Below are positions 5,219-25,527 of a stretch of 64,000 nucleotides of DNA, one piece after another; the stretch's first letter is position 1, and the number at the start of each line of letters is the position of its first letter. The notes under the pieces are model-generated. The model was not told where the DNA came from. It worked only from the letters and a program-made list of their open reading frames with translations, and did no database searches. The stretch lies in the NCBI GenBank assembly GCA_002269645.1, contig NIVC01002230.1, positions 62,001 through 126,000 of the forward strand. Direction: 5' to 3'. A program made the translations under genes and the position numbers. This DNA comes from Macrostomum lignano (Eukaryota).

Positions 5219-8200
5219 ATGATACTGAAGACATCTGCAAGCCTCAACTGCTGGCTGCCTCTTGCCTTCATTCTGACGGTCTCGGCTACCTCCTGTCTGA
5301 GCCTTGCTGGCCCAAACCGAGCTCATGTAAGTCTGAGCTTCAGCTGCTGCTGCTACTGCTTCTGAAGGGACCAGAAATTTGTTACTATTTTTCAGAAATA
5401 ATCATCATGTTCCGTGATTTTACTACATGTATATGGGTGATGATTATCCAGGTCAGGTCACTGAGTCTGTAGATACCGATTACCACTGCAGTTCAAATGA
5501 TTAGTGATGATTATCATCGCCTGGGCGATGATTGGTAGGATTATAAAAGACGGGAATGATGATCGGCATGATTATCAGAGCCTGAGAGATGATCGGCATG
5601 ATTATCAGAGCCTGAGAGATGATCAGCATGATTATCAGAGCCTGAGAGATGATCGGCATGATTATCAGAGCCTGAGAGATGATCAGCATGATTATCAGAG
5701 CCTGAGAGACGATCGGCATGATTATCAAAGCCTGAGAGATGATCGGCATGATTATCAGAGCCTGAGAGATGATCAGCATGATTATCAGAGGCTGAGAGAT
5801 GATCAGCATGATTATCAGAGCCTGAGAGATGATCAGCATGATTATCAGAGCCTGAGAGATGATCGGCATGATTATCAGAGCCTGAGAGATGATCAGCATG
5901 ATTATCAGAGCCTGAGAGATGATCGGCATGATTATCAGAGCCTGAGAGATGATCAGCATGATTATCAGAGCCTGAGAGACGATCGGCATGATTATCAGAG
6001 CCTGAGAGATGATCGGCATGATTATCAGAGCCTGAGAGATGATCGGCATGATTATCAGAGCCTGAGAGATGATCGGCATGATTATCAGAGCCTGAGAGAT
6101 GATCGGCATGATTATCAGAGCCTGAGAGATGATCGGCATGATTGTCAGAGCCTGAGAGATGATCGGCATGATTATCAGAGCCTGAGAGATGATCGGCATG
6201 ATTATCAGAGCCTGAGAGATGATCAGCATGATTATCAGAGCCTGAGAGACGATCGGCATGATTATCAGAGCCTGAGAGACGATCGGCATGATTATCAGAG
6301 CCTGAGAGATGATCGGCAAATCTTCGGATAGACAAAAAGTCAAAGAATTCGATTTTTTACTAACTAAAAGGTAACTTTTTTTAGCTAAAGTTCTTTGTTG
6401 TTCTTCTCTTTAACTCAGACCCATTGTAACTGTGATCCGATCCTGGGGGGGGGAGGGCTTCTGAGATAGTCATCTGAAGTTACTAAGGGAACTCCAGCCC
6501 ACAAAGCCTCTCTATCGGGACTTTGGGTCTTTTGAAACTTCAAGGTTTGAGTCTCTTCTCAGCTGTCTTCTCTCCTCTTATGTTATCACATCTTCTCTCA
6601 TGCTCTACACCTGGGGTTTAGAAAAAATTTTTACCTCAACGGCCAGTTAAACAATTTAGATCATTGACTGCGGGCCAGATGAAAGGGGAATGGGGGAGAG
6701 AAAGAGAAAGAACGAGGTGAGATGAGAGATGTCAGAAGAAAGGAGAGGTGAAAAGCGAGATAAGAGATGCGATGAGAGAGAAGATAAGACGAGAGGAGAG
6801 AGGAGAGAAGAAAGGCCACTGGCTGCTGCTGGCACAGAAGAACCGATTTGTCACCTGCCTTCATCGCGAGCTCCCAGGGACCTGGCGGGCAGGGGGCTGC
6901 AATGGAGGCTGGGGTGTCAAATGAAAATCTGGTTCCCAGCGATCCGATCCCCCCAGTCACGATTTCACAGCCTCTCCCGTTTCTCCCCGTAATCGATAAA
7001 TTTCATCAAACTCTGAGGAACCCCCGCCGATGTCAAAGATAAGCAGCACGGGTAAGCAGCACGAGTGAGCGTTTACTTGGATTTGCCTCTTGTTTACCCT
7101 AAAATTAGTAGCGACTCTGCACAATGTAAGAGGAATTTATAGCTGATAAATTGCTCCGCTAAAAGGCCTGATTTGTGAAGGCACCGTGACATTTTTCTGT
7201 CTTAGATCTAAGTGATAGATAACTCTCTCGTAGGAGCGAACCACTAAAATAGCCATTCCAACCATTGAGGTTGAAGGGTGGGAGGAGCGGAGCCATAGAA
7301 GCTGAAGGGTGGAGAAGAGAGCGGAGCCATAGAAGCTGAAGGGTGGAGAAGAGAGCGGAGCCATAGAAGCTGAAGGGTGGAGAAGAGAGCAGAACTATAG
7401 AAGCTGAAGGGCGGAGAAGAGAGCGGAGCCATAGAAGCTGAAGGGCGGAGAAGAGAGCAGAACCATAGAAGCTGAAGGGCGGATGAGAGCGGAACCATAG
7501 AAGCTGAAGGGTGGAGAAAAGAGCGAAGCCATAGAAGCTGAAGGGCGGAGAAGAGAGCGAAGCCATAGAAGCTGAAGGGTGGAGAAGAGAGCGGATCCAT
7601 AGATTTGAAGGGCGGAGAAGAGAGCGGAGCCATAGAAGTTGAAGGGTGGAAGAGTACGGAACTCCCCACTAGAACTAAAAAATTGCACTAAACCCGCCTC
7701 GCTGCCCAGCTGTTCGGACCCGGCTGCGAGTCTATCAACTGTGAATTCTCCAGCAACATTGATGGTGAGTGAGGAAAAACTTTTTATTCTATGGGGCCCG
7801 GCCCTGCAGCCCTATGCAAAGCCACAGCCAAGAGTCTAATCTGAAAAATCTAACTCCTAAAACTTCCTAACTACTATACTCAAACTTCCCAACTCCCCAA
7901 ACTTCCCGACTCCTCAAACTTCCCGACTCCTCAAACTTCCCGACTCCTCAAACTTCCCGAATCCCCAAACTTCTCAGCTCTCAAACTTCCTAAATAATCA
8001 CACTTCTCAACTACTCAAATTTCTCAAACTTCCCAACTACTTAAACTTCCCAAACTTCCCAAATCCCTCCCCACCCCCCCCCAAAATGGACGAGTCACAG
8101 GAAAAGCCTTCCAACTGCTCAGATCCCGCAGCTCTGAGTTCGTCACGCTGTCGCTACTCAATTGGAGACGCCAGCAGCCCAGCCTCGGACCCGCTGCTCC

Positions 8201-24753: not shown

Positions 24754-25527
24754 TCACGGCGCCACAGCGCACGACACGCCGATGCTGCCGAGGCTCTGCT
24801 GCAGCTGCTGGCCGCTTTCGCCCGTCCGCCTGAGCTCCAAGAATGGCAGCTCCACCCTGGCCTGTCCCGGACACGGGCACCGGACATCCGGCAGCAGTCT
24901 GGGCAGCCTGGCGGCGTCAGCATTGATGAAGAACTGAGGCTGCGGCTGAGCTCGGGCCAACTGGCAGCTGACGGGCCGGTAGAGCGCGCCGTGGCGGCCC
25001 ACCATGGCGTCGAGGCGGCGCAGGTCGGCGCCAGTCAGCGGCTCCGGCCGCGGCGGCCTCAGCGGCGGGTGCAGCGCGGCGCAGCCGGTGCCGTGCAGGC
25101 GGGTCACCAGACGGAGGCGCTGGCCGCCGCCGCCGCCATCCAGCGGCTCCAGAGACGCCACGGGCAGGCGGGCGGGGCGGCAGCGGGTGCTTGGCCGGCT
25201 GCCCCTCCAGCTTAGAGCAGTCGGACAGTGGCAGGTGGATTTGTAGCGCCGGGTTGGCAGCGAGTTGGCCGGCAGCTGAGTCGTGAGCTCGAATTTGTCG
25301 ATGCAGACGCTATCGGCATTCTCCGCCAGATTCGGAGAATTTCGCACTCTTTGGCTGAGGTTGCAGTAAAATGTAATTGTTAATGTTGTAGTCTTGTAGT
25401 TGTCAAATCTCAGGTTCGCGCTCCCGGCGCCCCAGCCGCAGGCAACGTGCTCAGTCTCGGATCTGAGCTGCTCTGCCTCTAGTAGCAGCAGAAACGACAA
25501 AATCGAAGCCAAGCAACTTGGCGACAT
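24754..25527 (-). CDS. Cassette B ligand: secreted intronless double IL-17-like protein, 257 aa
   Basis: ATG at 25527, signal peptide MSPSCLASILSFLLLLEA. ACGWGAGS is shared with ligand A. Module 1 is divergent (ENADSVC...LPTRRYKSTCHC). From ARLPVASLEPLD onward the protein is almost identical to ligand A. Confidence 0.75.
   Translation of the reverse strand: MSPSCLASILSFLLLLEAEQLRSETEHVACGWGAGSANLRFDNYKTTTLTITFYCNLSQRVRNSPNLAENADSVCIDKFELTTQLPANSLPTRRYKSTCHCPTALSWRGSRPSTRCRPARLPVASLEPLDGGGGGQRLRLVTRLHGTGCAALHPPLRPPRPEPLTGADLRRLDAMVGRHGALYRPVSCQLARAQPQPQFFINADAARLPRLLPDVRCPCPGQARVELPFLELRRTGESGQQLQQSLGSIGVSCAVAP

Follow-up and report, generated by a model that had tools for sequence, protein, structure and literature searches.

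Two tandem cassettes, designated A and B, were found in the window (the whole 64-kb stretch of Macrostomum lignano DNA that was analyzed). In each of them, a four-exon gene for a type I membrane protein on the forward strand lies tail-to-tail with a reverse-strand gene that lacks introns and encodes a secreted protein. On balance, and with some reserve, we explain this arrangement by an old tandem duplication of a convergent cassette, composed of a divergent IL-17-superfamily cystine-knot gene and an orphan membrane-protein gene, with gene conversion at a later time. For brevity, the two genes are referred to as ligand and receptor. The ligand is possibly a two-unit member of the IL-17 superfamily linked to an orphan receptor-like gene, which is of interest in itself; as a ligand-receptor module the pair is an unproven candidate.

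Organization of the Cassettes and Gene Models

The distance from the receptor stop codon to the ligand stop codon is 862 bp in cassette A and 1618 bp in cassette B, and the order and orientation of the genes are identical in both. An earlier note on this DNA had described such a pair of tandem cassettes with these two spacers, and we located it at the same coordinates. That the cassette was duplicated as a unit, as the note had also proposed, was borne out by the order, the orientation and the mosaic divergence shared by A and B. No further cassette copies were found within the 64-kb window, and an Rfam scan of the window gave nothing. An RT fragment is located between the two cassettes.

Receptor A was modeled on the forward strand with exon 1 at 5219..5326, which carries the start codon, a signal-peptide-like segment and a phase-0 donor (CAT followed by GTAAGT); exon 2 at 7710..7764, which codes for 17 residues plus a G, with phase 0 in, phase 1 out and the donor GTGAGT; exon 3 at 8123..8682, the main ectodomain exon, with 186 aa and seven conserved cysteines; and exon 4 at 9876..10526, coding for the juxtamembrane region, a poly-Leu transmembrane (TM) segment, the tail and the stop codon. 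The exons of receptor B, on the same strand, were placed at 15325..15417 (phase-0 donor, CAT followed by GTGAGT, ending as in A), 20932..21007 (phase-1 donor, G followed by GTGACC), 21121..21674 (ectodomain) and 22494..23135 (TM segment from (GCT)17, tail and stop codon), the acceptor of exon 2 being uncertain among 20899, 20914 and 20932. In both copies exon 1 ends in CAT followed by GT(A/G)AGT in phase 0, the phase-1 donor G of exon 2 and the AT that opens exon 3 give an Asp codon, and exon 3 has an acceptor with cag before this AT and a phase-0 GTGAG donor. The motif F-x2-G-C-x4-C-x2-S of exon 2 occurs only in the candidate exons of A and B when all six frames of the whole window are considered. 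A three-exon model, in which exon 1 is joined directly to exon 3, would need non-equivalent acceptors in A and B, and it is unnecessary because exon 2 is conserved. For the acceptor of exon 4 the sequence leaves two phase-0 candidate pairs (A/B): 9876/22494, which is the best and is preceded at about 30 nt by a motif resembling a branch point, and 9807/22431. AG acceptors that look strong, at 9846/9847 and at 22464/22465, were rejected because their phase, 2, does not fit the donors of exon 3. With these models, the two receptor genes are predicted to have equivalent splice sites and the same exon count and phases, in agreement with the earlier description, and the repeats reported to fill their introns are present as minisatellites and microsatellites.

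Ligand A is encoded at 11389..12207 on the reverse strand by an intronless reading frame of 272 aa with a signal peptide and 11 cysteines. Ligand B (24754..25527, reverse strand) has 257 aa and keeps all 11 cysteines of ligand A. As poly(A) signals, an AATAAA motif lies 3' of the receptor A stop codon (11024..11029, forward strand), and another one is available for ligand A (11213-11218, reverse strand).

Coding Status and Selection

The coding status of all four genes is well supported by GC3, cysteines and dN/dS. In the cassette genes GC3 is 0.74-0.89 versus a GC2 of about 0.5, and in the frame of exon 4, where the tail frame is stable, GC3 reaches 0.85-0.97. Exon 3, which codes for the ectodomain, has 43-45% amino-acid identity between A and B, with conservation confined to the forward-strand frame and a dN/dS of 0.48 at a dS of about 1.05. 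The ligands are 64% identical overall and about 96% identical across the last 141 aa; their N-terminal half has a dN/dS of 0.62, and dS is 1.0-1.2 across the diverged parts. In parts that are only 36-47% identical, 6/6 and 7/7 cysteines are kept (permutation p < 5e-5). Judged from these comparisons, both genes appear to have remained intact under purifying selection in both cassettes since the duplication. In exon 4 the copies have accumulated nine nonsynonymous and two synonymous differences since conversion, and therefore purifying selection is not directly evident for the tail.

Age of the Duplication and Gene Conversion

With a dS of about 1, the cassette duplication is, by this sequence measure, old. 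Where the two genes face each other, their 3' halves are near-identical between A and B (dS 0.01-0.07), with everything else saturated, and these halves have been homogenized recently by gene conversion. One homogenized block (9844..10954, 97% identical to 22462-23561) comprises the end of intron 3, exon 4, where dS between A and B is 0.01, and a (GACA)n repeat. The other (11346..11827, 95% identical to 24711-25186) comprises the 3' half of the ligand coding sequence (dS 0.073, dN/dS 0.28) and about 45 nt of the 3' UTR. The edge of the conversion tract falls inside the first putative unit of the ligand (unit 1, see below) and not at a domain boundary. A reading of the diverged outer and similar inner halves as functional partitioning was therefore dropped; any tract centered on a convergent pair would, for geometric reasons alone, reach the 3' ends of the two genes. 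The sharp contrast between saturated outer and near-identical inner halves cleanly illustrates gene conversion that spans two convergent genes.

Resemblance of the Ligand to IL-17

By inspection, both ligands have a hydrophobic N-terminus (MHPPLILSLLLALLLAA... and MSPSCLASILSFLLLL...) and no TM segment, so that they are predicted to be secreted. Two regions of ligand A, both on the reverse strand, were compared with IL-17: a C-terminal unit at 11392..11622 (residues 196-272, ...FFINADAARLPRLLPDVRCPC...FLELRR...IGVSCAVAP) and a weakly supported putative unit 1 at 11698..11994 (residues 72-170, RSLCPE...LPALRYEARCQC...C129...GTGCAALHPP). The Pfam check of the earlier IL-17 assignment was negative: IL17 (PF06083) scored 13.3 bits with ligand A, below the cutoff of 24 (E = 0.11), and did not match ligand B. 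IL17 was nevertheless the sole Pfam family with any signal for ligand A, with its best stretch at residues 93-113 in unit 1, and this signal was gone when the units were split.

Profile comparisons were carried out with hhalign against a core alignment of IL-17A-F, whose seed sequences had been validated beforehand. A match of about 25 columns was obtained at residues 213-237 (P = 1.7e-4), a score reached by 0/600 column shuffles. In global alignment, residues 196-272 scored 24.7 against the IL-17 core (shuffles 2.7 +/- 2.1, none of 250 reaching this value), with the elements in the correct order: DxxRLP...RC comes first, FLELRR is placed on ILVLRR next, and VSCAV falls on VGCTCV last. By this alignment the ligand follows the order of the IL-17 core motif, S-P-W ... 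D-P-x-R-Y-P ... A-x-C with the beta3/beta4 hairpin and the C-terminal knot strand, although the S-P-W tripeptide as such is not conserved. Unit 1 scored 12.3 globally, a value that 2/250 shuffles reached. The IL-17 columns matched by one segment of the ligand are also matched by a second, separate one; the internal repeat between unit 1 and the C-terminal unit is borderline (p about 0.05). Controls with NGF, TGF-beta, PDGF, SEFIR and TIR stayed at background level with the ligand, at most 14.8 locally and 6.6 globally. These alignments suggest that the C-terminal unit resembles IL-17 weakly but specifically, and that there is probably another unit upstream of it, more degenerate but built on the same cysteine framework. 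Of the earlier proposal that the ligand is IL-17-like, the specific core motif and layout were thus recovered by hhalign; the proposal was not supported by Pfam, where the match stayed below threshold, nor by knot Cys3 and Cys6, which are lacking.

As aligned, knot Cys2 would correspond to C104 and C232, and Cys5 to C164 and C268 (unit 1 and C-terminal unit, respectively). In neither unit is Cys3 or Cys6 kept, their positions being taken by S109/Q237 and A166/V270, respectively, and the Cys1- and Cys4-like C76 and C129 occur in unit 1 only. Invertebrate knots of the T1C type lack disulfide 3/6 and have 1/4 plus 2/5, the T2 type of vertebrates having 2/5 plus 3/6 (PMC11087794). The cysteine pattern of the ligand seems compatible with the T1C knot, and the joint absence of both partners of disulfide 3/6 is as expected for a real knot variant (PMC11087794).

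An AlphaFold2 model of the ligand from the two-sequence alignment was unusable (mean pLDDT 32). Homologs of ligand A were searched for by a word-indexed search of 5.8 billion proteins, and those of the ligand profile by exhaustive HMMER against 1.84 billion representatives, with zero matches in both cases. A scan of metagenome contigs and a PDB sequence search with the ligand profile (E <= 10) gave nothing, and by exact look-up the ligand was absent as a called gene from public gene catalogues.

The Membrane Protein

The receptor is predicted to be a type I single-pass protein, with a signal-like exon 1, one poly-Leu TM segment and a C-terminal tail. In receptor A the TM segment (about 9969-10058) is encoded by (GCT)20, and in receptor B by (GCT)17; AlphaFold predicted it as a helix (pLDDT about 85). 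The tail of receptor A (10059-10523) has 155 aa and is rich in Arg and Leu. By eye, its opening looks SEFIR-like (LLLIAASDE...LLLLVSRG). The ectodomain, of about 260 aa with cysteines, is all-beta in a low-confidence model, the AlphaFold2 model of the receptor from the two-sequence alignment being unusable as a whole (pLDDT 42). In Foldseek this model had no PDB match at E <= 1e-3 and no IL-17R among its matches; those with E > 1e-3 were generic Ig/FN3 sandwiches, cytokine-receptor domains included.

The assignment of the tail to SEFIR/TIR was not sustained by Pfam, by PDB sequence search or by calibrated profile-profile tests. Pfam detected no SEFIR/TIR, IL17R_fnIII or IL17_R_N domain in the ectodomains and tail, with none in the tail at E <= 10, and a PDB sequence search with the tail profile (E <= 10) gave nothing. 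Against seven SEFIR and four TIR reference domains, validated before comparison, the tail did no better in global hhalign alignments than its shuffles, 122/200 of which scored at least as high for SEFIR and 89/200 for TIR, and its sole local match lies out of register. Likewise, an ectodomain of IL-17R type found no signal in Pfam or Foldseek, nor in hhalign against the IL-17RA ectodomain, where the score was no better than that of shuffles. Degenerate SEFIRs are known, and the FN3 and SEFIR domains of IL-17R are often too degenerate to be detected (PMC11087794); a SEFIR of this kind in the tail may have escaped these tests. The word-indexed search of 5.8 billion proteins with the receptor ectodomain and tail returned zero matches, and the scan of metagenome contigs for the tail gave nothing.

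Discussion

In the model that we favor, the product of the first gene, which has no introns, would be secreted, 257-272 aa long and marked by 11 conserved cysteines. Its C-terminal 77 or so residues would make up a cystine-knot unit of the IL-17 superfamily, highly divergent, that kept Cys 2 and 5 and lost Cys 3 and 6, with a more degenerate unit of the same cysteine framework probably upstream. The second gene, with four exons, would encode an orphan membrane protein of type I that crosses the membrane once and consists of a beta-rich ectodomain, a poly-Leu TM segment and an Arg/Leu-rich tail of 155 aa. After the duplication (dS about 1), both genes would have been retained intact under purifying selection in both cassettes, and gene conversion would later have homogenized their facing 3' halves. 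As the most likely working model, the secreted protein would be a lineage-specific IL-17-type cytokine and its neighbor a candidate partner. The neighbor may or may not be the receptor of the adjacent ligand, the basis for this pairing being only adjacency and co-duplication, and it would signal, if at all, via something other than a recognizable SEFIR.

The earlier note had gone further and taken each cassette for a cognate IL-17/IL-17R pair, inherited and duplicated as a self-contained signaling module; the membrane protein would then be a degenerate IL-17R whose ectodomain is a double FN3 and whose tail is a SEFIR. This appears rather improbable to us: known invertebrate IL-17Rs match SEFIR at 1e-12 to 1e-30 (PMC8353272), and here the tail had neither a Pfam nor a PDB match at E <= 10, scored as its shuffles did against SEFIR and TIR with the local match out of register, and the ectodomain stayed at shuffle level against IL-17RA with no IL-17R in Foldseek. 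Such a pair would fit the IL-17 likeness of the ligand in profile comparison, the type I single-pass receptor whose beta-rich ectodomain is roughly as large as expected, the FN3 and cytokine-receptor domains among the weak Foldseek matches, the SEFIR-like pattern seen by eye at the tail start and the co-duplication of two members that have been preserved intact in A and B alike over a dS of about 1, and IL-17R domains are often undetectably degenerate (PMC11087794). A speculative version, which we hold to be quite improbable, is that each cassette is a self-contained co-evolving module in which a single-chain, pseudo-dimeric two-knot cytokine would bind the receptor encoded next to it, a new kind of IL-17R with no SEFIR or an unrecognizably remodeled one; the outer halves (N-terminal part of the ligand, ectodomain) would have diverged into two specificities, and the signaling halves would be kept identical by gene conversion.

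It is also unlikely, in our judgment, that the cassette joins two unrelated fast-evolving orphan genes copied together by ordinary segmental duplication, with an IL-17 likeness due to coincidence or convergence of short motifs, since the match is specific relative to other knot families and to shuffles, runs in order across the whole core with Cys 3 and 6 lost together, and places two separate segments on the same IL-17 columns. Consistent with unrelated genes, on the other hand, neighboring genes are routinely co-copied by segmental duplications, human ligand and receptor genes are linked no closer than chance (PMC1309615), neither gene had homologs in the protein and metagenome-contig searches, the Pfam IL17 match is below threshold, and the conversion tract runs through ligand unit 1 as geometry alone predicts. 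That the genes are non-functional (decaying pseudogenes, transposon cargo or spurious reading frames in GC-rich DNA) is highly improbable. Long overlapping reading frames on both strands of GC-rich blocks, a TM segment encoded by a trinucleotide repeat, the RT fragment between the cassettes and the absence of the genes from public catalogues could be read in this way; against them stand conservation in one frame only, dN/dS below 1 at saturating dS, the retention of all cysteines, the strong GC3 periodicity, and intact reading frames with matching splice phases in all four genes.

The usual active form of IL-17s is a dimer whose chains have one domain each. The ligand of the favored model resembles these cytokines in being secreted, in the motif N-x-D-x2-R-(L/Y)-P-x6-(R/K)-C of its C-terminal unit, in the LxLRR strand and the terminal V-x-C-x-V...P, in knot cysteines 2 and 5, in an extra C-x-C as in IL-17B to IL-17E and in a cysteine of unit 1 at the position of the SPW serine (knot Cys1). 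It differs by lying below the Pfam threshold, by having no detectable homologs, by the absence of knot Cys 3 and 6 and by being about twice the usual length, with apparently two units per chain; known invertebrate IL-17s have 115-175 aa and Pfam matches of 1e-5 to 1e-17 (PMC8353272). By description, Trunk, PTTH and CFSH are likewise divergent secreted IL-17-related knot ligands, and their receptors can differ from the canonical IL-17R, as in the case of the Torso RTK (PMC11087794, PMC10604874), whereas the membrane protein adjoining the ligand has no kinase domain. The latter shares with IL-17 receptors (double FN3, TM and SEFIR) the type I single-pass topology, a beta-rich ectodomain of similar size and a tail of about 155 aa, of SEFIR-like length, but gave no SEFIR, TIR, IL17R_fnIII or IL17_R_N signal. 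Lineage-specific duplication of IL-17-type genes in a marine-invertebrate-like genome is also seen in the IL-17 arrays of sea urchin, mollusc and hemichordate (PMC5457136, PMC8353272); these contain ligand genes only, and the cassette repeats a ligand and a membrane-protein gene in convergent orientation.

If the ligand truly belongs to the IL-17 superfamily, the family would include members far too divergent for standard domain searches to detect, and a two-unit single-chain architecture, of which no description was found in the literature, would be added to it. A cytokine gene would also stand in stable linkage with a gene of receptor-like type. As a rule, genes for ligands and receptors are unlinked (PMC1309615), and therefore a co-duplicated and co-retained pair would directly exemplify the idea of dosage balance and co-evolution. 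It would offer a convenient system for testing the origin of new ligand-receptor specificities. If the neighbor is not the receptor, what is left is an ordinary segmental duplication carrying two orphan genes specific to the lineage. Physically linked ligand-receptor loci exist in the plant S-locus (SCR/SRK), in basidiomycete pheromone/receptor loci and in Ciona (s-/v-Themis). As in the cassettes, genes for a secreted and a membrane protein are tightly linked in them and the paralogous or allelic pairs have diverged in presumed recognition parts; those loci involve other protein families, and a recognition role of the cassettes is hypothetical. TTAGGG-type repeats were also noted, and forkhead, fibrinogen-domain and DAO genes were readily recognizable.

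Structure of the two cassettes

Each of the two tandem gene pairs (cassettes A and B) contains an intronless gene for a secreted Cys-rich protein on the minus strand (ligand A, 11389-12207, 272 aa; ligand B, 24754-25527, 257 aa). The two ligands are 64% identical and are clear paralogues. A second gene, for which we use the working name receptor, has paralogous exons upstream of each ligand ORF on the plus strand. Its exon 1 (A, 5219-5326; B, 15325-15417) opens with an ATG, encodes a hydrophobic signal-like peptide and ends in both copies at the same phase-0 donor (CAT followed by GT(A/G)AGT). 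Exon 2 was not traceable by tblastx between copies and was picked among splice-compatible candidates (A, 7710-7764; B, ending at 21007); it has a phase-1 donor in both, and its final G joins the AT opening exon 3 to encode Asp. In both receptors this exon encodes F-x2-G-C-x4-C-x2-S, a pattern that six-frame translation of the window yields nowhere else. Exon 3 (A, 8123-8682; B, 21121-21674) is delimited at equivalent positions by acceptors with cag preceding AT and by phase-0 GTGAG donors. Exon 4 stops at 10526 (A) and 23135 (B), and its acceptor is represented by candidates only: the best shared one (GTGCAG followed by CCC, 9876 in A and 22494 in B, phase 0) is preceded by about 30 nt by a branch-point-like TTGAC in A and CTAAC in B, and the alternative, also in phase 0, lies at 9807 and 22431. 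The four-exon receptor model with phases 0/1/0 described in the earlier note was reproduced, with equal exon structure in both copies, and the stop-to-stop spacers of 862 and 1618 bp proved exact. The cassette A spacer contains one AATAAA for receptor A and one for ligand A. No additional cassette copies were found within the 64-kb window.

Coding status and history of the duplication

There is good support for all four cassette genes being truly coding. In the parts that have diverged, conservation is confined to a single reading frame. Nei-Gojobori dN/dS is 0.48 in receptor exon 3, at a dS of 1.05, and 0.62 in the N-terminal half of the ligand, at a dS of 1.22. In that ligand half, which is 36% identical, all six Cys of A match Cys in B (six of B's seven), and in receptor exon 3, 47% identical, all seven do (seven of B's eight; permutation p < 5e-5 for both). 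GC3 is 0.74-0.89 in every exon, against a GC2 of about 0.5, and stays at 0.82-0.97 throughout the frame of the receptor tail, where the adjoining spacer has a GC content of 20-45%.

Nucleotide alignment between the cassettes is possible in two blocks only: 9844-10954 with 22462-23561 (97%; exon 4, the intron 3 end before it and a (GACA)n repeat) and 11346-11827 with 24711-25186 (95%; ligand 3' half). The mid-spacers cannot be aligned. Since dS is 0.01 and 0.07 within these blocks, respectively, and about 1 everywhere else, the whole cassette was duplicated long ago, and recently the convergent genes underwent gene conversion across their facing 3' ends, possibly in one event, possibly in two. 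Duplication of the cassette as a unit, as earlier claimed, is borne out by two paralogous convergent pairs of old divergence. The conversion tract begins inside the putative first ligand unit (residues 72-170), near residue 127, and therefore does not respect domain boundaries. The contrast in divergence between outer and inner parts had been considered as functional partitioning; this was rejected, and the contrast is read as geometry, given that the tract crosses that unit. Exon 4 has since acquired two synonymous and nine nonsynonymous changes, too few to judge whether the tail is under selection.

Identity of the ligands

Pfam searches with ligand A returned IL17 only, at 13.3 bits (cutoff 24; E = 0.11), and nothing with ligand B or with the ligand split into units. 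No relatives were found among 5.8 billion proteins, among 1.84 billion proteins or in the PDB, and the AlphaFold2 model had a pLDDT of 32. Known invertebrate IL-17s have 115-175 aa and Pfam matches of 1e-5 to 1e-17 (PMC8353272), whereas these ligands are longer and fall under the Pfam cutoff; by this formal criterion of the family they are not members. IL-17s have little sequence in common and are closely related to Trunk, PTTH and CFSH (PMC11087794).

Profile comparisons, calibrated with shuffles, were made against an IL-17 reference of aligned human IL-17A-F cores, whose seed sequences were validated by the retrieval of 746 PF06083 proteins. In hhalign, ligand residues 213-237 (QFFINADAARLPRLLPDVRCPCPGQ) fell on the columns of the IL-17 core (...D-P-x-R-Y-P...A-x-C-l-C-x-G-C) at P = 1.7e-4 and a score of 30.9, reached by none of 600 column-shuffled ligands (12.5 +/- 2.5, maximum 26.7). 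Forced global alignment of the C-terminal unit (residues 196-272 of ligand A) kept the IL-17 order throughout, pairing FLELRR with ILVLRR and IGVSCAVAP with VSVGCTCVTP (score 24.7; shuffles 2.7 +/- 2.1, 0/250). Residues 72-170, where the best stretch of Pfam IL17 also lies, matched the same columns more weakly (12.3 in global alignment, a score that 2/250 shuffles also attained), with RSLCPE on RSTSPW and LPALRYEARCQC on YPSVIWEAKC. The two units align with each other in register, with 4/4 Cys matching (p ~0.05). Control alignments of the ligand with NGF, TGF-beta, PDGF/VEGF, SEFIR and TIR remained at background (at most 14.8 local and 6.6 global). In the alignment both units keep knot Cys 2 and 5 and have non-Cys residues at positions 3 and 6; the two partners of one predicted disulfide are lost together, as expected of a real knot variant, and this loss is compatible with that in T1C invertebrate IL-17s, a knot type without disulfide 3/6 (PMC11087794). 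The ligand probably belongs to the IL-17/Trunk superfamily as a highly diverged member whose chain may contain two units. The IL-17 likeness proposed in the earlier note stands in the calibrated comparison, where it is specific against shuffles and control families, but not in the Pfam or structure-prediction results.

The membrane protein and its relation to the ligand

The receptor has a type I topology, and its model (mean pLDDT 42, low) predicts an all-beta ectodomain and a confident transmembrane helix. The codons of this transmembrane segment form a (GCT/CTG)n trinucleotide repeat (A, 20 units, 9968-10027; B, 17 units, 22586-22636), so slippage can alter the segment's length. The tail (10059-10523, plus strand) comprises 155 aa with 17% Arg, 17% Leu and no Tyr; its C-terminus, -GFEV, resembles a class II PDZ-binding end.

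The earlier note expected a SEFIR/TIR fold in the tail, which none of the comparisons made supported. Pfam at E <= 10 gave nothing in ectodomain or tail, the PDB gave no match to the tail, and Foldseek of the model found generic Ig/FN3 sandwiches only, none at E <= 1e-3. In global hhalign comparisons with seven validated SEFIR and four validated TIR domains, 122/200 and 89/200 shuffles, respectively, scored at least as high as the tail; its sole local SEFIR match covers 14 columns out of register. The ectodomain scored at background against a validated IL-17RA ectodomain. On these profile searches the membrane protein is not assigned to IL-17R, its defining feature having been looked for and not found. 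As some invertebrate IL-17Rs are known to carry FN3 and SEFIR domains that have degenerated (PMC11087794), a missing signal does not prove absence.

Pairing of the secreted and membrane products is favoured by tight convergent linkage, by co-duplication and by the survival of all four genes under constraint since dS ~1. Neighbouring genes are routinely co-duplicated. [quoted passage not shown] We consider a putative cognate pair, of any type, possible but rather unlikely. Its specific version, an IL-17 with a SEFIR-bearing IL-17R, draws on the profile match of the ligand and has the tail results against it, and appears more doubtful still. Tandem IL-17 gene arrays occur in invertebrates (PMC8353272, PMC5457136); in the literature searched, neither IL-17 chains made of two units nor repeated cassettes joining a ligand and a receptor gene were found described.

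Neighboring genes and repeats

The window is animal DNA, and its other genes include a FoxJ2/3-like forkhead gene (31457-33039, minus strand; Pfam Forkhead 4e-17), in which an intron carrying an (AGAC)n repeat (31950-32068) splits the forkhead domain after ...GWK and downstream exons encode poly-Gln/poly-Ala tracts. A fibrinogen C-terminal (FReD) domain exon (40252-40779, minus strand; Pfam Fibrinogen_C 1e-22) represents a gene of the immune-lectin type, some 15 kb away from the cassettes, and exons of a DAO-type FAD-dependent oxidoreductase (51452-53273, plus strand; Pfam DAO 3.8e-18 and 8.5e-07) are separated by minisatellite-filled introns. Neighbouring retrotransposon gag/RT sequences were recognisable with Pfam. 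On the plus strand, one Ty3/Gypsy-like element (34303-39004) carries ORFs for gag, pol and integrase that are long and look intact, another (44150-47576; GC 67-69%) has pol broken across frames, and an isolated RT fragment (13808-14119; RVT_1 1.8e-12) sits between cassettes A and B.

The window is unusually rich in mini- and microsatellites. Interstitial telomere-like (TTAGGG)n tracts at 18462-18821, within a receptor B intron, and at 42725-43805 adjoin a 16-mer satellite (TCACAAGCTCGAAAAT), which in the latter flanks the telomeric repeat on both sides, inverted; repeat and satellite look like one mobile or satellite unit occurring twice. Giant microsatellites in intron 3 differ between copies ((AGTT)211 in A, 8695-9538; (TAC)184 in B, 21683-22236) and begin in both within about 10-15 nt of the exon 3 donor. 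In both copies a long (GACA)n microsatellite (10525-10954 and 23134-23722) starts exactly at the receptor stop and opens the 3' UTR.
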